A stretch of 64,000 bases of DNA from Paragordius varius (lineage: Eukaryota; Animalia; Nematomorpha): positions 8,680,001-8,744,000 of the forward strand of contig OZ176052.1 in NCBI GenBank assembly GCA_964247055.1. The letters are read 5' to 3'. The notes beneath the pieces were generated by a model, which saw only the letters and a list, made by a program, of their open reading frames with translations, made no database searches and was not told the origin of the DNA. Below, in pieces: positions 13,101-63,500 of the stretch (position 1 is its first letter; each line of letters begins with the position of its first letter). Both the position numbers and the translations under genes were made by a program.

Positions 13101-16100
13101 TTAATTAATTCTCACATTAGTAAAAGTGTTAAGATCTAAGTGTTTTTACAGAAATTGGTTACTGTATTCCATAAGATAACAAGTTTATTTACAACTACAG
13201 TAAAACTTTATTGCAAATAAAATTTTTCATTAACCTATAGTCAAAAATAATGTTAAAGTTAGAGAAGAGTTTTTTATAAAAGTTATTCTTACAGTAACGT
13301 ATGTCCTCTAACTTAATCTAATCGCAATAAAATTAAGTTGGCGGGAAGAGATGTATTTAATTACGGTAATACTTAATTTTATGCCATACGCTACTGTTAT
13401 CAGATTCTTCTGTATACAAATTAATTTCTATCTATCTTAAGTGATTTTCTAATTGCAAATTTTTAATTAAAGAAAAAGATTTACATTTCCTTTATCACTT
13501 TTTTTCTTATCTTTATACACAACATAATTAAATGATACTATCGAATATAAAATATGAAAATTATTTTATGATTTATAAGATTTTTATTGGAATGCTTTTT
13601 CATATAAAAAATAAATATATTGTCACACACGACGACATATTTATTAAAATGGGTGGAGACATAAAAAAGATGTATAATATCGAAAATAAATAACTTTTTT
13701 TCCGTGTGCGCATAACTTGAGAGAAAGCTGCTTAAGTATTACATTGTTTCTGGGTTATAAAACATAGGAGAATCGCTAAACTGTTTTTAAAATACATCAG
13801 AATCATTTTATTTATATATAATTATCCTATGTGTGACAGAAAATTATTAAATACTTTTGAGATTTAAGGATTTTAATTGCATCGTTTATAACGTCAAAAT
13901 CAATAAAACATGCTTTTAAGGCATATAGATAAGACAATATTATTATTTCTTTTTCATTATATTGTATATTGATTGAGGTTTATCGCTAAGTTTTTACTTT
14001 TAATTATTTTTATATTGATTTAATCTGTAATTATTTTAATAAACTCACTTTCAGAATATCGTGAAATATTGCCCCCACAACCGGTTAGACATCCATCTCC
14101 ACATTCTCATCAAGTGCCTATCGGGTTTGTCTCTGTCCCAATGCAAAGATTCGATGGTGATCGACCTCGTAATTTTCACAATATGTTTTTCATAAATCAA
14201 AACAACTAAGTTAAACAGCTTTTGTAACTTTAATCTATTATTACTATGCCAAATTATTTAGGATATATTGAAGAACGACGTATTCCACCCCCTTCAACTG
14301 CTTCTGGAGGTATGAACGATAAAAAAGGATTATTCTTTGTAAAAATTTTACACTATATCCCTCCCTCACTCTTATTTTTTATCATTTTATCAAGGATTTG
14401 ATCCTAATGCATATCATGGTGGATGGGAACGCGGTCAAGGGCAACCAGTATATTTGAAGGAAGCCCCCAGAGATTATGTTCCGTCTGGCGGAGTCACTCT
14501 TATTGAAGATCGCCAGGACAAAAGTATGTATATTTTTTGAACAAAATGTTTTTTATGTTTTTCCATGTGCAGACCATTTAAAAATATTATAATTATAGGT
14601 TTACATCTTCTTCCAGGATATGATACGCGGGAAACTCATTCAACTCCCATAGGTAGTATTAAAAATTAGTTATATTTACCTGGAACTTTTATAAAAGACA
14701 TGTAAACTCCAAGTACCTAATGTTTTACCAAAATATACATTTTAACCAATAGGTGTTGCACACCCAACATGGAACCGGGATAAAGAGGTTCATTTCCGAG
14801 ACTCTCAATTTCGTGATGGTCCACCCCATGATCAAGGCAAGCGCAGAACTTCGCTCAAGGATCGGTTTAAAGAATTAGTCGGCTTGGATCATTCACATCA
14901 TCCAGCTCACGAAGAGAAAGGGGATTACGTGCTAACCGGTGTATTTACCGATGACGATAAAAAGGCCCTGAACCACGAAGAGATAAAATCGAAAGATGAC
15001 GGGAAAACTATCACTAAAACAACCGAAGTAACGGAGCATAAGGAAGAAGTTAAAACCACCGGACCTAGTGCCGATCAAAGAATTCGGGCTGGAATAAGTG
15101 ACATTAATGAATACAATCGCGGTGTATCGGATGAACGTTTACGTACGCTTAAACGGGATGCCGAACGCATTAGTCGAGATGCTGACTCACTTAAACTTGA
15201 TGCGAAAGACTTAAAGGATGATATCGACAATAAAAGGTAAAATATGTTGTTATTGTTATTGTTTAAACTGCAATATTAAAATTATCCCTATACTATCCAC
15301 CATTTATCATATATAGAATTTTTGCCGAATGGGGAATGTCGGATCAACCGGCCAACGCATCAACTACGGCCGTTGTTAATACAAGTTCGACAACAACCAC
15401 AACACGGGCAAGGAGTAATTCCATCAAAGGCTACATACACGATGAAGTGGATCACATAAAAAATCGTATAATGCATCCATTTGGGGGTGGTCATCCACAT
15501 GCTGTTGCCGCGGCAACGGCAGTCCCAGCCCCTACAGAACGTCGTCCATCTATATCGGATCGCGTATCTGAAAAGTATCACCATATGAAAGATAAGGTGG
15601 AACATTATGTACATGATCATTCCCATTCACCTCCTAGACATGACACTACGGCTGCTGGTGCAGTTGTTACCGAGTATCATCCCCACAAAAAGAGTATGTC
15701 GGAAAAAATATCAGAAAAGTTTGACGATATGAAAGAAAAAGTCAAAGAACCATTTACACGTGATGACAAGGATCGTGGTTCATACAGAACTGAGAGTGGC
15801 GGTGTAGGATACTATCCACTGCCATCCTCTCAACGATATTATGAAGAGAGGCCACCCGCTGTGTACTATGAGGAGAGACGATATCCTGCCACACAGTATT
15901 ATCCCTCAGATAGGGGTGGAGCTAGTGTTGTCCCGATTGCAGTTGCTGGGGGTGCAGCTGGAGTAGGTGCATCAGAAGCTATGCGCAGACATCGTTCACC
16001 CTCAATCAAGGAACGAATAACGGAATTCTTTAAGGGTCCTTCCTCAACCACAGATAAGAATATTCCAGCGGCAACAAGCCAAAATGTCCCTACTTATGTG

Positions 16101-19100
16101 GATTATGGTAAGCCCCAGTCATCCGGATTCACTAGCACCTCGTATGTCTCCTCAGCACCTCAAGATTACTATAGGTTACAGCGCTCACCTTCGGTCAAAG
16201 ATAAAATATTTGATGCAACGGATGAAAAAGTTTTTCATAACCGTTTCTATGACCCGAATGATCCATTGTATAGGGGGCCTTCGCAATTACAAAGAAAGCG
16301 TTCTATTAAGGAAAAGATTGCGGATTCCGTACAAAATGCAAAAGAAAAAATTACTGGACCAAGTACAACAGTCAACTATGACAAACCTGGAAGAGCTTAT
16401 TACACTGATAGTATATTTTTGTCTTTTTATGTTTCAGTTGTCCTTTAATTTGATGAATTTTTGATGGCTAAAAGCTATTTATTATTGAAAAATTAACCTA
16501 AATTTATGTTTTTAAAATAGATGTCCGGGTACCTGTATATTCTACTGTTGGTTATGTTTCTCAACCAGAACCAACATTTAATGAATCCGATTACTACAGA
16601 TCCCCAATTAAACGCGAAATTATAACATCGGAGGAAGTTCTTAGAGTTCCAGGTTTGTTTCCCCTCTGCTAAGATTATTATATTAAAAACGGACGAAAAA
16701 CATAATTCTTTTATTGGGTGTGTATTTAAATCTTTTAATAAACTAATAATATTTATTTTTTTAGATACTGTAATAATCGATGATTCTGTTAAATCCCGTC
16801 TTCCTGACTGGAAAAAAGGCGAAGCAGTTCAAGCCATTCCTATAACAGTTGTGGAGCGACGCGAATACATACCAGGCAAATATATTTTTTACCAAAATTT
16901 TATATAGTGAATTTGGCTTTTTATTGCATGAAAAAACAAATTTTTACCAACATTTATTTACAATTTATGCATCATCAATAATTTAATTTCTAACAGCTCG
17001 AAAAGATGATATTCCTTACCAATCTAATCTTAGAATAATCGACGATAATAGAGATTATTATGGTACACAGAGACCCGTAGAAACGGTGGAGATTCAACGA
17101 ATTCCAGCTCAAACAAGTATTTTAAATGAATTCTTTTTTCATTAAATTTAACTTTTTGGAAGATATCACCATAAATAATTTTCCTTTGTGATGTATATTT
17201 GGTAAAATGTTTTTTTTAATGATATGTAACAAAAACCTTACATTCGCTTAAAATGGGAAAATAAATGTACAAAATTTTTATGACTTACAGATTATGTATC
17301 TGATTACAAACCATTTCCTCCACCAGCGACCCTTTTATTAGGCTCTAAACCCTATTATGGCGATGATATTTCAAGCGGAAATCGGTTGGGAATTGGAGGT
17401 AACTATAAAAAACTTGTAAACATAGGTAACTTATTCGGTGTGTCAAACTAGAATTTTTAATGTAATATATCTCTCGTATCCATTTATGTTTATAAAGAAA
17501 TTTTTGTTGCTAGTTCCAAAAAAACTGGCCTAAAAAGAAGGGATATAAATAAATATATAAAAATTTTCTAGATCGATCAAGGATCCAAATTACAACGAAT
17601 GACATTCGACCGGGTCCACATTACGTAGCAAGAGATATTGGAAGGAGTGTATCCCCACCCTCGTATTACGCTACCAAATCTACCAGTTTCCGCAGTAAAT
17701 CGTATGATCCTGCTCGATTCCCACGTTTTGTGGTTGTGGATAAAAGGCGAGGCGGCGGCGCACCAGGGGATTCGACTTACGGCACCGATTTTTACAAAGA
17801 AGTCTTGGCTGGCAAGTTTAATGATCCAGATTCCGCTTTTCCAAACCTCAAATATTTGCCCAGGACAACGTCAGCCAGCTCATTCTTTGGTTCAGGGGGA
17901 CATTACACAACTAGTGGTGGGGCTGGTCAACCTCCTCCCTCCTATTATGCCGTAGAGCATCACGATAAAAAGAAGGGAGACTCATTTAATATAAAAGATT
18001 GGTTTACTGGTGGTATATTTTCCGATAAAAAAAGTAACAAAAAACCCGAAGTTGAATACGAAGTTTATGATCCCCACGCTCAATATGCTACTCAACAGTT
18101 GGTTCGTGAGACGCAGCCTATAGCGGTAGAAAGTTCTCAACAACCCTATATCATTGAGGAAACAAGTAGGGATTTGAAAAAAATCGCTATTTGATTATTA
18201 CTTTAATTTTATTACGTGTAAAATATTAATATTAACATTTAATTGACCATTTTATCTTTTTATTTTATATATGTATATGTGATCAATATGTTTTCTGTTT
18301 GTAACGGTGTAAAAATGTAATACCTTTTAATACCTATTTTCTATCAGTTGCTTTATTTCTATAAAAAGCTTATATAACAACATATATCTGCTAACTATAT
18401 TTTATTTATCATTAGATAGAGTGGCTTTACCTCTCTTGTTTCTGTAACTAATTTATTTGTGTGCCCTAAATTTCTTTTTTAGGCGTTCAAAATACCCTTA
18501 CTCCTCACGTAGCACAACACATACCGGTCATGACCGTATCCCAAACTGATCATTTAAAACATGCTTCTACAGTTAGTCAATCATCACCTCACATTGTAAA
18601 CTATGAATCAAACTTAAATAATATACCTTCTGCTAACCAACAAATATTTTTTAAGGATTTTTCTCATAATGAGTCCTTAGTTCCCGTCCCTACTCCTAGT
18701 AAGGAGCAAATCGTTTTGTATAGTGATTTACATAAACCACTCATATCCTCTCAGGCTTATAGTACGGTTAAATCAACTGGTGATGTGTCAGGGCCTAGTA
18801 CCAGTAGCCTTAAAGAGAAAGAAAAGAAAACTTCTATATTTGGAAAGAAACCTAAAAAATTGTTTAACAAACTTAAAGATTCTCTTAGCATTGATAGAGA
18901 TGATAAGCTAGAAGCGTCAAAAAATAAGGCTCCAATAATTATGGGTACTAATATCCTACCAAATTCATCCGATAAAGTAGGCAGCACTGTCATAACCTCG
19001 TCCCAAAGTGCAAATGCAACAACAATCGATGCTATATATGATCCGAAAACGGGTCATTACAAATACCATGATCCATTGAATCAACCCTACGAGAAGATTC

Positions 19101-22100
19101 AGGATGGTATTTTTCATGATGCCTTGTTTAAGGAAAACGGTAAAGAGTTAACAAAACATCTTGGACCTAATCAAGTAGAAGTCATACCAGGAACCGAATT
19201 AATTAACAAAATGTCCACCATCCATCCAACAACATTGTACAATAATTTGGGTGAGAATGCATCTTTTGTTCATGGTGATGGATCAGTTATTACAACTAAC
19301 GTTGATCCAAATAATTTCATTAAACCGGACCTGATGTCTGCTAAATGGCCAAAGCAAACAGAAGCTACCAATGGCGGTATTTATGAATATAAGGATCCTA
19401 TTGGTGATCCCTATCATAAAATTAAGGATCCTGCCTTACAGGATTCTGTGTTTAGAGAACAAGCTGTTAAACATTTATCTACTATGTCATTATCAACCAC
19501 CCATGCAGACCGTGTGTATACTAATCAATATGATACTACGAAAACTATATCGTCTCTTCAAGAGCCTATTTCATCTTACAAAGTAAGGAATCAAAAATCG
19601 GATTCCAACTGGGCCATACCACGGAATTCTGCAGATATTCCACCTGAACACTACTTACAACAAGGTAATAAAAATTTATATAATGATATAGGTAAAGATG
19701 GTAAACCAAACCACGATGTTTCTACTTTGGGTAAGCTTGAGAGAGATAAAACATCAACTCATTTTTCGAAAATCCAAACCATAATGCCATCGCTAGACAA
19801 TGTTGGCAAACCAGCCTTATTTAGTTCCAGCATGCCACTTAATTCAGCAAAAGTTCTTAATAATGAGTCTCCTCCCATTACAACTTTTATTATCCATTGT
19901 AGACCTAGTGATTTAAAAGTTTCAAAGGATACATCTCAAACTAAAATATCATCATCGCATAGTAATAAATTGGATGCGACACCTCACCCAGCATCCTATA
20001 AACTTGTTCCGCATGTTAAAATCCCGGAAAATTCTGCCGATATCCCTGACCACAGTTATGATAATCGTATCCCTGTGAAAGAGGAATCAATCAAGAAATC
20101 GGTTTTCATACCGTGTCCTTGTAATGGACCTCCACATCCTCATTCTGCTCATGAGCATGAGGTAAGTGATGAAAATCAAATAAATATCAGTAAGAATTCG
20201 AGAGATGATGATACTAAAGCAAAACAACCATTTAAACCTTTACCCTCAGGTGGCGTTTATTTACCAGCTGAGAAAAGTATGCAAAGAAAAAATGAAGGAG
20301 ATTTTTCTAATCATGCCGATATAAATGACAAATGGCCCAAAACTATTAGTGTATTACCTGGGGATGAAATTAAGGATGAATACAGCACTCCAAATAAAAG
20401 GCAACCTAATAACATTGAAAGGGTGTGTCAAAGTTCTCCAATAAATTACAATAACAGCACATTGACATCGAAAGGCAATAACATTCAATCACAGGGTCAA
20501 GCAATTAGTAGTGTAAATTATGAAAAAGAAATACCATTGCAAAACACAATGGATGATTATGAAATTAACACTGGTCATTTCAATGCTCGTAATAGCTTGA
20601 TAGTAATCTGTACTCAAACTAGTATTGATACATATGACAATACTACAATGGCTTATACGCCATCTTATAAAGAAAAAAATTACAAAAGCAACATTGTGAA
20701 TAGCATAGAAAATGAGGAACCAACTTCTACTAAATCAAAACCTTTTTCTGGGATTAAAAACTTTTTTGGGGGTGTTGGGATTAAACGAGAGAAATCTCCA
20801 AAAAATGTGCCTCTGAATGAATCCTCACCTTTAACAAATGTTAATAGGATCACTCGTTCAGAAGTCGATAGCCCGAGTGAGATATCTCAAATAGTATCAA
20901 ATACAGATAAATTAAAACTTTTAACAGACAATGTAATAAATCGAAACGATATACAAACTGATTCGATCAAGCATTATCCCGTTACATATGTTAAAGACGA
21001 GGTTAAAGGGCTACCACAAGAAACGCTTGTTAATAAAAATATAAAAGATGGTATGAGTGATACTAAAAAGTCAAAAAAGAAGCCATCAATTACAAAATTA
21101 TTTAGCTTTAAATCTGATAAAAGTGATAAAAATAAAAACTCAATCTCAAATGCTAACAATGTGATACCATATACCGAACCAAAAATAACGGAAACTACTT
21201 TGATCGAAGATAAAACTTTAAGCAGCTCCCACGATTTCGATAAAAATTTGATGAAATATATACTAAGTCCACCTCACTCGGCAATAGATAAACCAATTTT
21301 TGTTCAAGATAATCAAACGGATAACAATAAGATAGAAATGAAGGATGATTCAAATTTTGAAAATAATTTGATGCAATACATTTTTAGAGATAAGGATGAT
21401 TCTCACAGCATAGGATATAATATTGATAATAATAGTAGATGTGAAAGATTATCAACCTCTAATATAGGCTTATTGCTAAATTATATTACAACTCCCACAA
21501 GTTCCAATGAAACTGGGGGCGACATGACTAAATATTCCCCCTCTGTAAAAAATGAATTATTAAAATACGTTTTAACTTCTGCCACAGATGATGATGATAA
21601 TCAATCAAAAACTAAAACCAATAATAATTTACTAAATATGACCATTATTGATACTAATCATAACACAAGCACACATCATACGATATATACATATATATCT
21701 GCACCATCATCTAACAACCATAACAAGCAAACTAAAAAATTTGGGGATCAATTACAAGCTTTTTTATTTGGGACAGCGAATTCAACTTCAACTAAATCAA
21801 CAATGGATTATAATTCTGAACATAATAATAACAACACATCTTATCCTAATTTAGAGTCTTCTCCATATAATACCAATACAATTACCGTGTCACCTCAATC
21901 ATCAAATCGGAACATCACTCAAATCCAGACCAATGCTGTTGGAAATTTAGGAACATTCAATACAGCCACCGTCCAGCCAAATGATAGGCCGATTCCACAT
22001 TTCGAAAATAAGGGAGAGGATTTAATTTTTACCCACCATAAAACTGACACTGGTTATGAAACCGATGGGGAAGAGATTGTAAGGTCTGCTATTCAACAGG

Positions 22101-23663
22101 GTAAAAGGAATTTAGAAAATATGTCATCTTCGGATAGTCATCAAAATAATGTTCAAAATTCTCTTACATCATCGGAAGAACCAACTACATCTGCAAGGAA
22201 TGGAGGCCATGTCGAAGAAAAGCACAAGGCTGATAAGTATATTTCTTGTTTATTTTGTTTGTTTGAATGTTGCAGATTCAAAATAAGCAAAAACAATTTT
22301 GCATGAAACCACAACTAAAATAATTATTTATTAAAAATAGGATATAAACGATAAAAATGATAATCCGTTTCTTCATAAAATTTTACAAAAATATTGTTTT
22401 ACTTTTTATATATGTTTTCTAATTTTATTATTATAGAAAAGGGTTTTGGCTTTTCGATTACCTCAGTCTAACACCAACTTCTGACACTCTTCATCCCAAT
22501 ACATCATCATCAACTCTACTTTCAAATTCAAATTTATTGACAAATTCTCAGAATTTAAATGAAGATAATATCGTTCCTCGAAAAGATATAAATCTGAAAA
22601 GAACACCCACAGATATTAAATCCACTAAACTTGAATCACAACAAGGTAGGATTAAAAATTCACGTTATTTACATAAAAATGCTACAGGGAATGACGGTGA
22701 TGGATATTTATCTGATAGTCAGACATATAATTTAAAGTAATCCATTATTTGTCCCTTAAAATAAATTACACAATAACATCTATTGCTGTAGTATACTACG
22801 TATGGCTTTATAATGCCTTGATATAATTACTAATACTATAATATATATTACTTAATCCAAATCTCTAACTTCCTATTTAACCTTAACCTAACATTTTATG
22901 GTCATCAAGGGTAATAAAAGTTCTTTCCTCCTGTTAATATGTCCTGCTTATGTCATATCATAAATGTCGTCCTCTACTAGTAAAGACTTCAAATTAATAA
23001 GATTTACGCATGGGAACAACACCATAACATTATATGTATTGTTTGTGTTTTCGTTTGCATGATATACATATAAATAACCTATTTGTGACCTTTGATAAAA
23101 TCTATCCGTCGGTTACATTGGCTACTTTTCTAAAATTTATGTATGACATTAACAACTCTTTCTGCCTGTTAACTAACTCCTTACAAATTACTAACACTAT
23201 GCGATCGAATCAAGCTTACCCAAAAGTAGAATCGGCATAAACCTATAAATATATCTATATTTATTTTAAGGCTTTTATTTATTTTGGGGAATTTTTAAGC
23301 ACGGAATTAATTCTAAATTTTTAATTTATTTGTATGTTAATAAAGGAAATCTATTAGGTTAATACCAAATTTTTAAAATCTTGCACAAGTCAATTATAGA
23401 TCAATATAAGGTTTATCATTGATACGGGGGATTATTAGTTGTTTAGTGCATGTTTTCAGGGTATTAAAATCATTTTTTTAATAATCAATAATTTATTTAT
23501 GACTATGTTCAATTTTTTATAAAGGTCGGAGGATCATTATGGACGAGAAATGAAACTTATTGAACGCATCGTTATGCAAAACAAATTGAAACTTATATTA
23601 CTATGTTTGGCTTTTATCATATTCTTATCCATTTATTTTACATCTCAAGATTTGATTTTGTAA
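4179..23663 (+). CDS. Large unrecognised, mostly disordered protein (~3044 aa) with C-terminal transmembrane tail anchor; 24 exons
   Basis: Phase-consistent exon chain: 4179-4268, 4433-5153, 6655-6706, 7873-8183, 9802-9917, 10026-10063, 10695-10831, 11612-11902, 12545-12652, 12818-12907, 14055-14168, 14262-14309, 14395-14523, 14599-14652, 14753-15236, 15317-16410, 16521-16652, 16765-16875 (GC donor), 16997-17116, 17291-17398, 17572-18165, 18483-22236, 22437-22736, 23525-23663. Total 9135 nt with no internal stop. Ends ...MQNKLKLILLCLAFIIFLSIYFTSQDLIL*. No known domain recognised. It could be more than one gene or isoform, and the start exon is the least certain part. Confidence 0.7.
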
Positions 23664-54231: not shown

Positions 54232-57200
54232 TCAATCCAAATTTTCTTTTCGCAAAAGTGTCATCATTGATGTTGATTCGGGAATTTCTGAAGTCACTTT
54301 CGAAAATCGAACATCATAAGTTTTGGCAGATTGCTCTGTCAAATTTATGCATTCTTGTTCCTCTGTAAAATCTATATTAATAAAAAAAATTAAAAATATT
54401 TATATCCAAAATAATATATTTAATTAACAGTTAAATGCAACGATCAAATTGAAGTCGTTTGTGATAAATTTGTACTTATAACATTGATGCACCGAAATAT
54501 AAAAAATAATAAAAATTGATATTACATATTTTATGGATAAACTTGTAGGTAAAAATTTAGCCAACATACATGTGTGCATTTGCTAACAAAAAATGTAAAA
54601 ACTATTTTTTATATTTAAATTAGCTGTGATCTTAAAAAAATTAACTTTAATAAGCGTTAATAAAAAAGGCGAGATTTGGCAGTCGTAAAAAAATGACTTC
54701 TTTAATATGAAGCTTTATTAATATTTTGGTTTATTATATAAATTTTATTAGGATAGAAGCCTGAATTTGAATTAGAACCGTTCCTTACAGTATTTTCTTT
54801 CAATTTAAATATGGTCTGGGGTTTTTAATTGCCCCAAAATTTGAAGTGCTAAAATAACTTTAAAATTAAGGATTTTCTGGTTCATTAATCTTTATATATG
54901 TATATTTTAGGTTTTTTGGCGTTTTTATATTTAAAAAAGTGTTTTTAATTTTATCCTATATAACATAAAAAAATATTCATGTACAACAATTAATAAAGTT
55001 AATAAAACATACCGTCAGTCTTGTTTTTATGTGATGGCGCATAAAATATAAGTATGGATAACACGTAAAGATTCCACATCCCATAAACGCCGGTGTAGAA
55101 TGCCGATGTGTACTGTAAATTAGGTAGTATGCCTATTAAGAAGATATATAAAATTTTGATGATTTAACATTATCGAAAATTAGCTGGTAAAATATACTTT
55201 TTATACTAGTTGCAAACTTAGCACATTTTTCTTGAAAATGTGGCATTATTGGGTTAGTACAATACAATAACTCTCATTGTTGGAACCAAATTTTTTTAAT
55301 ATAATATTGCTTAACACACAAAATATACCTTGAAATCAATGAATTTACATGAGTATAAGTATTATATACAGCCAATTAATTTTATGAATTATACACTTCT
55401 AAAAATGCACCAATCAATTCTCACATTATCTTTCAAAATTTTAGACAAGAGTTCATGAGTAATTTTGAAAGTTTAACTTTAATATTACAAATATCTAATA
55501 CAAAACAGTTTAATATGCTAATAATGTTATTCCTTATTTTAAAGTTAAAAACAGACTAAACATTTATATTAAATTTAATATTTTCTAAATAATTTTAGCA
55601 AAGATAATAACCTTTGTGGGCTCTATCATCATCAAGGTCAGTCCATTTCCAATGATTTTCACTAACGTGGCTTATGAGGAAATAACTGATTGTCATACCA
55701 GCACAAACGCAAGTAACACCCATCAAAAATTTAAAACGATAGATAATACCCTAAATTTTGAGGGGGAAAGAAAAAAGTTATATGTCTTGGAGTTAAATTA
55801 ATAAGATAGCAATAAGTAATTCATAAATAACATATGAGGGTTATTCAAAAAATATATACAGTATTATAAAAAAATATTTTTTTAACCTAGATTTACTAAT
55901 AAGACCTATTTTGTTTTAGGTTGCAAAATGAATAGAGATGTAAATTGGCAAAACCCACAATAACTTAAATTTTTTGTTTATTGTTTATCTATATCTTGCA
56001 AATCTAGATGAAAAACCACCATTAAAAGTGGAAAGGAGCGTATGACATATTATAAATTAAAAAAAATAATCGGAGAATATACTTATTAACGAAAAAACTT
56101 ACTTCATATTTGAGTTTAATGGTTTTATTCATGGCCGGGAGCATAAGTCGTTTACGAGAGATGTTTCTAAATACGCGATAAACCAAACTTCCCAACAATA
56201 TTATGTAGACAAATAGACATAACGAGGAAAGTGCCAGTATTGAAACAGCCAATTTATTTCCAGCCTCTGTCGACCAAATATTGAAAAATGGGTCCTGTAA
56301 TTCAACACCCCTAGGAATAAAATATCGTTGTTTTAAGAGTTTCAATTAAAAACTTGGAGTTATTTGATAATAATTATGGGTATTTTCATTTTTTAAGCAT
56401 CAAAACATGTATAAATTACTTTCAAAACTAATGTAAAGAAAGTTACATCATAAAATTTAAAACAATTGTTTTTAAAATGTTTGACAAATATATATATACC
56501 TTTCACAAACTTCAAATATGAATAAAACGACAGATCCAAATCCAACGCCACCCAAATAATGCCAATAAGCAGAGAGATGATTTCGTGGGACATCATCCTA
56601 AGAAGTTAATTAAAAATTTCATAAAAGCGAAATACATTTTATTTGACTTTATGCCACGTAAAATATTATTACAAGTGGATAAAACATCTTACTATTAAAT
56701 GTTCCCCACAAAATATGATCCAAAATATGAAAAGTGATGCATAGAATAAGCCTTGTCGAATATCGCTGTAGAATAACATGTAGGGCATATTGAACCACAA
56801 AGTGAACACATCTATTGGAACTAATCAAATTGATATAAAAATTAGTAGCGGAACGAATAAAATTGTAAAATAATGACTGAGAATTAAAAAATATTTCAAT
56901 ATATACTATTTAAAAAGGTCATAGATATTCCCAACATAAGGATAGTGTATTCCAATAATGAAATCCCAGTTTTAACATAATTTCGCGTAGATTGTAATTG
57001 TTGACCATTTTCTACAGAGAGAATAATTGGATTTTATAATACTGGGAATAATTTTAAATAAATAATCACAAAAATTGTACTATTAAAGAGGGGGTTTGAT
57101 TCGGAGTTAGTAACATTCTTGTTATTGTGCCCATTTGTAATGTGACTTTGGTCTTTATATGTGAATGTATCTTTGTTGCCTGGCTGATATTTTATTAGAA

Positions 57201-59376
57201 CTCGCCTCCAAAACCATATAGTAAAAGCCAGGATAATTGGAAACCAAATTATTTTCAAGCTAAACCAAATACGGGTAAATCCACCGTTTTGATGTATTTC
57301 CTAAACAAACATATAATAAAAATTAAAAAGTTAAAATTATTTATGTTTTTAACTGAGTGTTTATTCAATTTGCAGTAAACTTGGTATATATGTTTGACAC
57401 ATTTTAAGATATAAATGAAAAAATTCGACATAAATTTATGAACAGGAAGCGGAGACCCAACTTAATTTTTCTGATAAAGCCAAAAATGATGGCTAAAAAC
57501 TTATAACCAATTCTGATTACCTTTTAAAAAACTACTACCCTGTTTAACAACCTATAAAATGCCTACCGTTTCTATACATTTTTAAGGACATGTAATATAC
57601 CGATTTTATTTTATAACTGGTTCGACTCACCCATGTCAAAAACAAACCTAAAAGCAAATAAAAAATTACCACGAGCCATAAATCTTTGACTTTTCCCAAT
57701 CCTTTGTTAAGGCCCATAGATATGTTTGTGGGTAGTCGGAGATTTATGAGATAATAATCATGATAAACATTTCCCAATTCAAATAAGGGAATTGTGCTAC
57801 AATTGTAGTAGTACCCATCAATTTTCTATATGATATGGATAAACTGCTTTATTTTATAAAAGATATCAAAGTTATTACTCATTTAAATAATGCCCTTTTA
57901 AATTTGAAATGTCAAGTTTAATATTTAAAACCAAAACTGACTAATTATTTTTATCAACTTAGATATTATAAAAATGAATAGATATAATTCAATGATATTT
58001 TATATCATGTTGATATAAATATAGTCACAACAAAGTGTGAAAATTATCTTACATATTGTTACATTAAAAATACACTATAATTCTTAACAAAATGAATTTA
58101 TTTAGATAATTTAAAAGTACTATTAATATACCATTTCGTCATCTATGTGACAATTCAAAAGGCGATCTTGTACTGCATGAGCCATAAACTTCCATTTATT
58201 AGGCTGATCCCATTTATTACGATATCCTAGCTTACTTTCGATACGAATGTACTTGGATGCTATAAATAGAATGGATAAAAAAGGCTTCATAAAATAAATA
58301 ATACATTTATTGGATAACGAAACACATTTTTGACAATGCTCTTGTTGGTAAAACATAAATTGTATAATTTTACATAAATCAAATATTTACTCATTTCAAT
58401 ATGTTTCTTATATTCAATATCAATCATCAGTAAACCGAGCATTGAATTAAACCAGCGCGACATGTCCAAATCAAATCCATCTTTAGGCAAAGGGATCTAT
58501 CCAAAAACAAAATATAAATAAGTTTTTTTTATAAATAATATGGAGGGGTAAAACTGTTAAATACAAAAACCGATTTGATTTTTTTTATAATAATGTTTTT
58601 TTTTTCATTTTTAAGGAAAGGGATGATAAGCCGAAACGCGTATTTTAATAGTTATGAAGGCCGGTGATAAAAATCAAATAACTAATTTGATATTTTTTCA
58701 AATAGTTTTATACCGTTCCTTTTAATCTTTATAAACACCTTTATATTGTTGTAAATGCATTTTCAATTATAACATTCATTTTTTGTTTTATAACAGTATT
58801 AAATAAATATGGTTGACCAAATTCAACCTGGAAAACAAAGATAACATCATTGGCGTGCATATTGTGTTGTCGGGAAAAGGCATTTAATTCTTCTTCATCC
58901 ATGCTATTAAGGTCAAACGTGTAACAATTTGATTTCTCCATCGGTCTCAAAAATAAAAATTGGTCGGGTCCGGCATCAAAAATGTGATTTTGGTCAAAAC
59001 AGGTCGTAGCAAGTATTTGTTGGACGCTAGTGGGTGAAGGCGCTAAATTAAAATAATAGCTTAAATGTATGATTACTATAACCATTTCAAGATTATTTTT
59101 CAAAAATGTTTATTGTGGAGGAAAATATAGTAATTCGCTACACAAAAAGGCAAAATATAGGCAAAATAAAATATGAGAGTTCGGTTCATTACCTTTTTAA
59201 AAAATTGGTGTTTTAATCTAAAATATTCAATATTAATTTTATATATAAGTATAAAATCAATATTATATACCGATAAGTCCTCCGAGCAAAAAGCAAAGAA
59301 TTTGAAAACCGAATAAAATCAGGCAAATTATAATTAGCTTTTTGCCGCTTAATCGTTCCAATATAGTTCCAGCCAT
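54232..59376 (-). CDS. wls: Wntless / Evi / MIG-14 Wnt-secretion transporter
   Basis: Exons (minus): 59376-59271, 59042-58828, 58496-58391, 58259-58132, 57825-57670, 57300-57081, 57011-56907, 56820-56693, 56597-56500, 56310-56103, 55750-55612, 55132-55013, 54371-54232. Translation: [14 protein letters not shown]...[69 protein letters not shown]...[36 protein letters not shown], ...RKENLD*. Confidence 0.96.
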
Positions 59377-59466
59377 TAAAAAATTAAATTACACCCTACA
59401 CCATATAAAAATCATGTGTATTGCCTGGATTGTCATACATACATATTTCCCGCAAAATTTAAATTT
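59377..59466. promoter_or_regulatory. Putative 90-bp bidirectional promoter (wls / eco) with TATA-like and E2F+CHR-like motifs
   Basis: This is the whole interval between the two divergent ATGs. It holds TATAAAA (59404-59410) and TTTCCCGC-AAAA-TTTAAA (59446-59463). Function is inferred. Confidence 0.55.
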
Positions 59467-60276
59467 ATGAAATTGAGAAAAAGATTTAAAAATAAACAAC
59501 AGCTAATATTAGTATAATTAAGTTATATTTTTTAGGATTATGGCCAAAAAAATAATGGATATATTAAATGTAAGGAGTGCAATATGCTTTATGATGATAA
59601 ATCGCTGGATGACCAAAAATTGCACAAACAAATGCATAAAATCTACAACACTTCAATACCATATAAAGTATTTTTTACCATTTAATTAAGGCAATAAATA
59701 CTAATCGCATTCTCAAAGAATATTATGATGGTGTAATCACGTACCTGTGTCCATCGGATAAATTTTTTTCTAGTCCTAAAATACGGCAATTATTTATTTT
59801 ATTTGAACGGGAATTATCAACTTCGCAATCTCCGATAAAAGACAATATGAAAGTTGATTTAATAGTTTATCATAGCTTTTTTTATATGTCCATAATAATT
59901 ATATCATAGGATGCTGCGTATCTGAACCTCTTGAAACAGTATATTTATTTGTACTAAAAATAGGCCAACGAAATAGATAAAAGCCAATTAAATGCTAAAG
60001 ATTTTATAACAGCATCCGATCAATCGAAAATTGTTAGCGTGAAATGCGGTATAAATAAGATTTGGGTTCATTCAAACTATAGAAAACGGCAAATCGCCAC
60101 TAGACTTCTTGACACAATTTTGTAAGAAACTTTCTTTATATTAAAATTTTAGAATTAATTTTTATTACGGCAATATTTTGGATAAATGTGATCTTGCCTT
60201 CAGTTCTCCAACCGAGGATGGTTGGAATTTTATCAAGAAATATATGATGGATCAAGAAACAATCAAGATTTATTAA
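59467..60276 (+). CDS. eco: Eco1/ESCO cohesin acetyltransferase (PIP box, C2H2 zinc finger, GNAT domain), ~227 aa, five ultra-short introns
   Basis: Exons 59467-59511, 59536-59667, 59691-59852, 59876-59938, 59964-60121, 60153-60276. Spliced product: MKLRKRFKNKQQLILDYGQK...CKECNMLY...HKQMH...FLYVHNNYIIGCCVSEP...CGINKIWVHSNYRKRQIATRLLDTI...LAFSSPTEDG...IY*. This matches the ESCO motifs QLIIDAGQK, GCLIAEP, CGISRIWV and IAFSDPTPDG. Confidence 0.9.
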
Positions 60277-60536
60277 ATGCATTTATAACTTTTTATATCA
60301 ACATCACATTCACATTATTTATATTATTATATTTATGTATCATCATCAATCAATAAATGCAATCTTTATAATTTTTGCTTAATGTGGTGCGTTCTGGTGA
60401 ATCCCATTTATCGACTTGATCTGTATCGTCTGTTGTGCTTCCATACCCAGTTCCCTGAGAGGTCAAATTATAGTAGAGACTCTGATTGTAGCACCATCAA
60501 TTTGTTTAAGGTTTAAATTGTGTAAAAAATTTGCCT

Positions 60537-63500
60537 CTAAAGTAGTATATCATCTAATCCTTGCAGCATAAATTTCCCCACAACTCCAATCACCAATGTT
60601 ACAGTAATGATATAATGTGGAAAGGAAAAGCGAATTTGGGTTGAACCGCCACTGATATAACTTGTGTAAGGTTGGCTACTGCTTTGTTCAATATCGTTTG
60701 ATACGTCATCGATTTGGTGTTTATGGGCATACAAACCTTTTGTGCAAAAAAAGAGAATACATTTTTTTCTAAAATCCCTTGGAAGGAAAATGTAATAATA
60801 ATGGATTAACAAAATATAAATTTTGGATAATGCCAAAATAGTGGTAAATTATATAAATTTATAAACAAAGATCACTGATTTTTTGTTAAAACTAGGGATT
60901 TAAACCAGAAGCGTTTTAGTAACGGAACAATTTGGAACCACAATGATTTTCTATTTTTCTAAAATTTTGATCATTTATTTTTTCAAAGGAGAGCATGCAT
61001 TAAATTTTTATAGTTAATCTCATAATATGTTTGCTGACTTTAATCCATATTGCATTAATATAATAGGTTATCCGTAAATTGAAATGAAACCAAATCACAA
61101 TCATTGGATCAAAAAAAACAATGTAAATTTTTTTGCGCAAAGAATATACTAAAAAATTCTTTAAAACCGGAATTTCGGATCCAACCTTTGGTTAAAACCT
61201 TGATCAACAATATTTCGATTTCAGTCATATTTAAACCAATTTATATTTTATGAAAAGCAAAATATATTAAGCATTTTAATAAATTGTATCGTGGGTTTTC
61301 TTCGTTTCTAAACGCAAACTTACAAAAATACTTTATAAGGGATTATTTGCCACAATTTTTACAATAGCATATCTTAGATTAATTCCAAAATAAACATCTT
61401 TTCCGAATACCATTACCTTAGTAAATTTTAAAATTAAAATTTCGATTCTCGTTATATTTTATGGGAACCATATTAATTTTTAATAATGAAGCAAGATATA
61501 AGTTGCAATCTTACCAATATGATCTTTAATATTGTTGTCGTATTTGGTGGCTTCATCATTTCTTGTCATTGTTGTAGTTTGTGGCGGTATTGTCGATTTA
61601 TAAATGACTATTTGAAATTAATATATGAAAAGGATTTAAAATAATATATTAGACATAATGAAAATATAAATATTTAGTTTTATTTTTTTAAAAAAAATTA
61701 TGATTTAATTTCATTTTTCGTAATTTTAGTTATACAGCTCTATATTGATGTATCAATTAAGTATATTTTCGCCATTCTTAATTTTGGTAAAGTTGATATT
61801 AGCATATCTTAAATCCTTTTTTGATTTAAAAGTTATATTACGCGTTAAATTTGGAATTTCGTGAGCCTTATTAGACATTTTGTTAAAAAATAATTTACAA
61901 GTATACAGTTATCAATAATATCATTTACTTCAAAAATCAGCCAACATATTTAGCATTGGTATAAAAATGTGTAAACAATTAACGAAGAGTAAAATGTAAG
62001 GATAACTAATAACAACCTCTAATCCTAAAATTTTTTCTATCCTTCCCATAATCATTTTTACCGACACATCTATAAATCCCAGAAAGTTGTGGATGTCCCT
62101 TGGGTATGTGCAAAACTGTCTCCATGACATCCGGTGATAAATGACGGTTATATATCATTCTAGATTCAAATTTTTTTATTTTAATTTGGTAAATATATAT
62201 ATATATAGGTATATAATTTTCCTTATGGTTTTAAAAATAAAATTTAGTTTGTTAATTAACAAATTATATATACATATCACGTTGGAAATCGACTCTTTAA
62301 ATTAAACTTATGACTTTAATACTTTGTAAATTTGACTAATTAAATATATTTAAAGTAAACACTCTTACATAAAATTAAAAATACTATATAAATGATTTTT
62401 TAATAAGAAAATATTTAGAAAAATATAAAATTAATAAATGTTGATAGACTTACATGTGTATATTGTTAGTAATTTTGACCCTATCTTTGAGCCAAATTGT
62501 GTTTGGAGAAGGGTAGCCCTTAAACAAACAGCTAATGTTAATAGAATCACCTGTGTAGGAGATATCATCGTTGATAAGGCCCAAAGTATGAGCTTTGTTT
62601 GATGGCTCAATATCCACAATTTTCGGTGGATCTATAAATTATCATTAGTAAAAGTACTTCTAGTATTTTAATAAAATAAATTATTGGTGACATTTTTTAT
62701 TTTTACCTGAAATCGACGCGGTATATATTTAAAAAAACAATTTCAAAGATCTTTCTTGGACAAGTAAGCAGTACCATAAAAAATAAGGGTATTATTTATT
62801 TTTAGAGTTTTTATTTTTATAAAATGTAGTAGACAGGTTAGGGTTTGGGATTATACAAATAAAAAGTAAATGGACTGATTTTTTTGTTAATTTAAAAATT
62901 AACCGTTGTGATCAATTAATTTAAACTTATAATATTACTATATCTTAACACTCAACCTATGTGATATGATTTAATTTGTATCGCATGATAAGCTTATGTC
63001 TAATTTTTTAGAGCTTCAAAGCTACGGTCCAACCAGGACAGACCTAGCCCACTCTAGCACATTATAAAACAAAAAAATTTGATTTTTGAATTTTTTATTC
63101 TTTTTCATGTTTGTTACTGTAGTAAAAAACACAATTTTAATTATTTTAATCAATTTATTCAAAAAATAGTGATTCTAGTTAAATACCAAATAAACAGATT
63201 GAAAAACTCGTCCAATAATGATCACAGTTAAAAATATTTTAAAAAAAAATATTTTTCACTGTAAAAATGGTAAACCTCATATAATTTATATTAATAATTT
63301 TACATTTTATGTTAACTTGAATTTGACGGCTTACACTTGGTTGAATTCCATTTTCTGCCAAACAGACATAAATTCCAGCATCATGGCTACTAACATTGTT
63401 TAAAATAAGTTCTGTCCCTTGCTTGTTTAGGAGAACTATATAAATTATATATTATAAAATCATTGTGGGAAAACTGAAAATAATTTAATTTGGATTATAT

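Follow-up and report, generated by a model that had tools for sequence, protein, structure and literature searches.

We describe a gene of Paragordius varius whose five introns all belong to a tiny size class (23-31 nt), each of them ancestral by position, whereas the genes to either side have introns of ordinary size; this combination is what the locus adds to the ultra-short introns published for animals. It lies at 59467-60276 on the forward strand of a 64,000-nt stretch of contig OZ176052.1 (the whole of the DNA analysed, hereafter the window) and is, by its predicted product, an intact and minimal (227 aa) gene for an ESCO/Eco1 cohesin acetyltransferase. We regard it as highly probable that the five segments are genuine U2-type GT-AG spliceosomal introns of ancestral origin that have shrunk in place to 23-31 nt.

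Reading frame, splice junctions and protein identity

The ESCO locus was resolved into the following exons and micro-introns:

59467-59511, forward strand: exon 1, 45 nt, from the first in-frame ATG; basic N-terminus ending in QQLIL
59512-59535, forward strand: micro-intron 1, 24 nt, phase 0, GTA...AG; an in-frame TAA is its second codon
59536-59667, forward strand: exon 2, 132 nt (44 codons), CCHH zinc finger (Pfam zf-C2H2_3)
59668-59690, forward strand: micro-intron 2, 23 nt, phase 0; human ESCO1 residues 53 and 54 are contiguous across it
59691-59852, forward strand: exon 3, 162 nt, two ancestral exons fused; matches ESCO1 residues 58-102
59853-59875, forward strand: micro-intron 3, 23 nt, phase 0, GTT donor; placed by the junction test and outgroup positions
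59876-59938, forward strand: exon 4, 63 nt (21 codons), inside the single blastp alignment to the ESCO family
59939-59963, forward strand: micro-intron 4, 25 nt, phase 0, containing TACTAA; placed by the junction test and outgroup positions
59964-60121, forward strand: exon 5, 158 nt, GNAT motif A (CGINKIWV...RKRQIATRLLD), Acetyltransf_13
60122-60152, forward strand: micro-intron 5, 31 nt, phase 2, GTAAGA...AG; placed by the junction test and outgroup positions
60153-60276, forward strand: exon 6 including the TAA stop, Acetyltransf_13
60274-60276, forward strand: stop codon TAA, end of the spliced CDS

When the five micro-introns were removed from the 810 nt at 59467-60276, a 684-nt CDS of 227 codons ran from ATG to TAA; the coordinates, sequences and lengths of the GT-AG segments (24, 23, 23, 25 and 31 nt) and the expected size of the spliced CDS were thereby recovered exactly as the initial annotation had given them. 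Without splicing, stops closed all frames of the locus, and keeping any single one of the five introns introduced a premature stop. Given the local base composition, the probability of a stop is 0.085 per codon, and a run of 227 open codons would arise by chance with a probability of ~1.6e-9. GC content was 16.7% in the introns versus 29.8% in the exons. No sign of a pseudogene (stops outside the introns, frameshifts or loss of catalytic residues) was found in the 684-nt CDS, and its motifs were intact. A ciliate genetic code was ruled out because the CDS holds no in-frame TAA or TAG and the gene terminates at TAA. The dinucleotide AG was absent from the 90 nt 5' of the ATG (59377-59466), which leaves no possible upstream acceptor; an upstream ESCO exon was thus rejected, and the 227-aa protein is complete.

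Junctions were tested by holding four of them fixed and enumerating all GT..AG pairs at the fifth. At every junction the proposed micro-intron was the sole frame-preserving GT-AG pair shorter than 46 nt. Longer frame-preserving pairs were present at junction 1 (63 or 66 nt), junction 4 (46 nt) and junction 5 (82 nt), and these options speak for a reading in which the ESCO gene is real but at least one junction differs, either through longer alternative introns or through partial retention giving isoforms. Each option, however, would cost between 7 and 68 coding residues, conserved ones of the zinc finger or GNAT core included, and would shift the junction off a site common to the outgroups; we consider different junctions unlikely. 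The initial annotation had also seen in the intron lengths the pattern expected if retention is policed by NMD. Its counts stood (four introns of non-3n length, and a 3n one that contains TAA in frame), but they were not significant and carry no weight, because a pattern of this kind is expected by chance often enough among five introns that are 83% AT.

When the whole window was scanned for AT-rich GT..AG segments between open frames, 56 matches were returned, compared with 21-54 in shuffled sequence. The scan was therefore non-specific; the evidence for the micro-introns is thus their clustering combined with homology, not the motif by itself. No second convincing micro-intron gene emerged from this motif scan.

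The identity of the product was established exon by exon. Pfam placed zf-C2H2_3 in exon 2 (E=1.3e-10, profile positions 5-39 of 40), where the C..C..H..H residues were all present, and divided Acetyltransf_13 between exon 5 (profile positions 2-29, E=5.8e-11) and exon 6 (positions 32-68, E=1.8e-9), a split that was as predicted because the phase-2 intron between them interrupts one codon. The GNAT domain carried the GI(S/N)(R/K)IWV motif and the basic-x-x-x-I-A acetyl-CoA loop and aligned to both ESCO1 and ESCO2 chains. Against human ESCO1 (5t53), exon 2 covered residues 10-52; exon 3, whose first residue falls at 54, aligned over 58-102; exon 5 covered 168-191 and exon 6 covered 196-224. The end of exon 1 aligned with KQLII|D. 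Human ESCO1 was contiguous across junctions 1, 2 and 5, with no residue gained or lost; across intron 5, which splits the codon of residue 194, residues 193-195 followed one another. The spliced 227-aa protein gave a single blastp alignment to the ESCO family over residues 11-217 (best E=2e-42, 36% identity). Pfam, the human ESCO1 alignments and this one end-to-end blastp alignment thus bore out the claim that ESCO homology continues on both sides of the junctions.

The protein collections searched contained no close (hairworm) ESCO orthologue, whether annotated or derived from transcripts, the best match being 36% identical. Only 8 weak matches were obtained when a 52-aa exon piece was compared with 1.8 billion representatives, and two profile searches seeded with exon pieces retrieved many ESCO proteins, all at most 36% identical. 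The zinc finger and the Acetyltransf_13 GNAT core were colinear with those of ESCO1, ESCO2 and Eco1 (PDB 5t53, 4mxe, 6sp0 and 5n1u) over the whole catalytic module. Compared with these proteins, the predicted 227-aa product is without a long N-terminal extension and resembles yeast Eco1 in size.

Intron positions in ESCO orthologues

The P. varius gene was compared with the genomic sequence of ESCO genes annotated in Capitella, Lottia, Nematostella, Pollicipes (a barnacle) and Tetraodon; outgroup exons were mapped exactly, and all intron positions were placed on one protein alignment. Alignments A3 and A5 were used, and A1, A2 and A4, in which MAFFT misplaced short exon pieces, were set aside. 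Soboliphyme ESCO was left out of the comparison, its exons being not mappable. The initial annotation had proposed that most junctions appear to match ancestral intron positions, and the agreement proved stronger than claimed: in Capitella all five micro-introns had a counterpart in the same alignment column and phase, as did 4/5 in Lottia, 4/5 in Nematostella, 3/5 in Pollicipes and 2/5 in Tetraodon. By our own simple hypergeometric estimate, the probability that 5/5 land on Capitella's six positions among ~645 is ~6e-12. Vertebrate genomic ORF fragments, in addition, start at R-NNF(I/V)YG, in agreement with the phase-2 position of micro-intron 5.

Mapped introns of the five outgroup ESCO genes measured 48-1313 nt. 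Micro-intron 1 had a counterpart in column and phase in Capitella (62 nt). At this site the Nematostella and Tetraodon ESCO models start exactly at the exon after the intron position, and the Lottia model starts three codons before the junction, covering the site and showing no intron there. The counterparts of micro-intron 2 were 54 nt in Capitella, 216 nt in Lottia, 532 nt in Nematostella, 357 nt in Pollicipes and 423 nt in Tetraodon; those of micro-intron 3 were 50, 302, 89 and 610 nt (Capitella, Lottia, Nematostella and Pollicipes, respectively). For micro-intron 4 they were 48 nt (Capitella), 245 nt (Lottia) and 230 nt (Nematostella), and for micro-intron 5 they reached 1157 nt in Capitella, with 257 nt in Lottia, 442 nt in Nematostella, 390 nt in Pollicipes and 90 nt in Tetraodon.

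Exon sizes were conserved as well. The zinc-finger exon was 132 nt in P. varius, Capitella, Nematostella and Tetraodon alike, and the homologue of the 63-nt exon 4 had that same length in Nematostella and was one codon longer, at 66 nt, in Capitella and Lottia. P. varius lacks a further intron, in phase 0 at alignment column 155, that Capitella, Lottia, Nematostella and Tetraodon all possess; exon 3 is thus a clean fusion of two ancestral exons, and with one intron lost there, both intron loss and shrinkage have acted on the ESCO gene.

We conclude that the five ESCO introns are most likely ancestral ones shrunk in place. The cnidarian-bilaterian ancestor of the ESCO gene would already have contained an orthologue of each micro-intron; all five would later have been reduced in place to 23-31 nt, and a sixth intron of that ancestor would have disappeared altogether.

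Reproducibility of the locus and neighbouring genes

Contigs of two DNA runs (X2 and X4) and of two RNA-labelled runs (X9 and X11) were compared with the window over 54800-60700. X2, which comes from an independent study under another species label, showed 0-1 differences over 59385-59595, 59683-60097 and 60246-60552, with depth present in every bin across the ESCO gene; intron 1 was without difference, and introns 3 and 4 were covered by one contig. X4 was ~4-8% divergent from the window over 54800-60700, with many indels. One of its contigs (59223-59795) reached from Wntless exon 1 across the first two ESCO introns into exon 3, its only two gaps being indels at 59240 and 59258 that lie outside ESCO, and a second (60033-60367) crossed intron 5 with 0 gaps. 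The locus is thus reproducible and physically joined to an animal gene, and the lengths of introns 1, 2 and 5 are unchanged in the divergent sample. X4 bears the same species label as the best-matching run, yet it is divergent, and the X11 RNA contig described below is divergent too; several lineages may share this label. As far as its topic goes, a 2026 preprint on Chordodes misidentification (10.64898/2026.02.03.703548) would suggest such a multi-lineage label.

These contigs bear on whether the segments could be removed from DNA rather than RNA, by a programmed elimination in somatic cells like that of ciliate IESs, which the segments resemble in size. Their ends lie at ancestral intron sites and read GT/AG, not TA/TA, and the DNA contigs of three samples all carry the segments, with no joint that skips them reported. 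Elimination at the DNA level is accordingly very improbable in our estimation.

RNA-labelled runs of the same species label contained the sampled ESCO words at a share of 0.00, and runs X9 and X11 gave no RNA contig on ESCO over 54800-60700. The sole RNA contig on this 5.9-kb stretch was one of 126 nt from X11 (depth 561), which joined two Wntless 3' exons lying ~510 nt apart and differed from the window enough to suggest another lineage. The lack of a transcript in the RNA runs would suit a decaying pseudogene whose five segments are small insertions that resemble introns by chance, and the window scan showed AT-rich GT..AG segments beside open frames to be common by chance. Such decay is difficult to reconcile with the placement of all five segments at ancestral intron positions and phases, with 684 nt of 27% GC sequence free of any other stop or frameshift, with the intact CCHH zinc-finger residues and acetyl-CoA motif, and with the unchanged intron lengths in X4. 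We judge a pseudogene improbable and retain the reading of an intact gene with shrunken ancestral introns.

The ESCO gene stands head-to-head with a Wntless gene, which was recognised by its Pfam domains (WLS_GOLD and WLS-like_TM) and its homology to human WLS (7drt), and for which the following features were recorded:

59377-59466, no strand assigned: 90-nt spacer between the Wntless ATG (59376, reverse strand) and the ESCO ATG (forward strand), without AG
59043-59270, reverse strand: Wntless intron 1, 228 nt, fixed by homology
57301-57669, reverse strand: Wntless intron separating the GOLD domain from TM1, 369 nt, fixed by homology

The 90-nt spacer, judged by its length and layout, would be either a very compact bidirectional promoter or a region of overlapping 5' ends. 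The X11 contig places a further Wntless intron of ~510 nt between the 3' exons, and a PDF receptor gene has an intron of ~180 nt between TM5 and TM6; micro-intron candidates near the PDF receptor were resolved as this ordinary intron. The contrast with neighbouring genes that carry ordinary introns (228, 369 and ~510 nt in Wntless, ~180 nt in the PDF receptor) thus held as the initial annotation had drawn it, although doubt attaches to the 69-nt Wntless intron that it cited (57012-57080), since the alignment with human WLS continues to the end of ...RRVLIKYQP and sets in again near ...ISLLEY. Two short candidate introns, of 35 nt (57114-57080, with TACTAAC) and 31 nt (57042-57012), were observed at 57012-57114 on the reverse strand of Wntless, both in the loop where homology to human WLS breaks off. 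A search with Wntless exon 2 found no syntenic relative.

The same neighbours bear on a mis-assembly, which the initial annotation had named as a way for its reading to fail, and on a contaminant with short introns (ciliate, myxozoan or dicyemid). The locus occurs under several species labels, which lends such an origin some color. X2 nevertheless reproduces the locus from an independent study, one X4 contig links Wntless exon 1 with ESCO exon 3, the standard genetic code is in use, and the neighbours (Wntless, the PDF receptor and an Ig-domain gene) have introns of 180-510 nt. Among the alternatives considered, mis-assembly or contamination is the most improbable. The presence of Wntless, a PDF receptor and Ig-domain exons marks the DNA as that of a bilaterian.

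On the 3' side, a convergent ORF on the minus strand ends at 60350-60352, 73 nt 3' of the ESCO stop, and had no Pfam match. Within 60269-60357 the AATAAA of each strand falls on the stop codon of the opposite gene, and the 3' ends of ESCO and of this candidate convergent gene probably overlap. Ig-domain exons lie farther on, at 62.4-63.8 kb. The window as a whole is gene-poor and repeat-rich with ~27% GC, in agreement with the 26.9% GC published for the Gordionus genome, and Rfam and tRNA scans of it were empty. A region of 34-40% GC at 14000-22300, noted earlier as a giant disordered protein, holds open frames of 370 and 1258 aa; these had no Pfam domain except a weak Dehydrin-like match, and an exact look-up of the 1258-aa product in a gene-position index returned no record.

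Splice signals and ultra-short introns in other lineages

The 5' ends of the micro-introns read GTA in 4/5 and GTT in one, only intron 5 (GTAAGA) coming near the usual animal consensus, and all five 3' ends were a bare AG after A or T. Internal A residues occurred in all five and TACTAA in intron 4 only; no common branch-point motif or fixed distance was found among the five introns. We propose that the segments would be removed from the pre-mRNA, probably by a conventional spliceosome that recognises them across the intron from minimal signals (GTA or GTT, AG, and an internal A as branch point). The same spliceosome would also process the 200-500+ nt introns of the adjoining genes.

To our knowledge, introns shorter than ~30 nt were long thought absent from animals. 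Paramecium reportedly has introns of 20-35 nt whose retention is said to be under surveillance by translation and NMD. The ESCO introns share this size range, and retention of any of them would likewise give a premature stop, the sole 3n intron having its TAA; unlike Paramecium, however, P. varius is an animal with the standard genetic code, and its five introns are too few to speak of 3n depletion.

In a survey of 51 animal genomes, introns <30 nt were found in myxobolid myxozoans and Dicyema only, both with compact genomes (Hadjez et al. 2026, PMC13644364). The myxozoan introns <30 bp were validated there by positional conservation, the same argument as used here for ESCO, and intron definition with minimal signals was argued for the short introns of myxobolids and dicyemids, which have a reduced 5' signal (GTa) and A-run branch points (PMC13644364). 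Nematomorpha are not mentioned in the main text of that paper, and intron length was not discussed in the hairworm genome papers searched. Like those of myxobolids and Dicyema japonicum (PMC13644364), the ESCO introns are GT-AG introns of about the same length (~22-30 nt there) at conserved ancestral positions in a parasitic lineage, with a reduced GTa. The published introns have presumed branch-point A residues upstream of AG, to which the internal A residues of the ESCO introns would correspond, and little or no polypyrimidine tract. The ESCO introns differ in their setting. In myxobolids and Dicyema the short size is the genome-wide median of a compact genome, whereas the window is gene-poor and repeat-rich; a majority of introns of at most 30 nt, as in myxobolid and dicyemid genomes, is not what the window's neighbour genes show (180-510 nt). 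With such introns in adjacent genes, the short class coexists with ordinary introns.

We put at about even the chance that P. varius represents a third independent animal lineage with introns <30 nt, here as a discrete class in a large, repeat-rich genome that keeps introns of hundreds of bases to kilobases, so that one spliceosome would serve two length regimes, gene by gene. In the window, introns of 23-31 nt beside others of 180-510 nt separate intron miniaturisation from whole-genome compaction, and the animal offers a natural setting in which to study the recognition of 23-nt and 500-nt introns within one nucleus. The ESCO gene will be missed by aligners and gene predictors run at default settings, so that ESCO and genes like it could be recorded as lost. 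If the proposal is true, standard gene finders and BUSCO would miss micro-intron genes generally, and some of the low completeness of nematomorph genomes (71.6% is reported for Gordionus) could be an annotation artefact and not gene loss.
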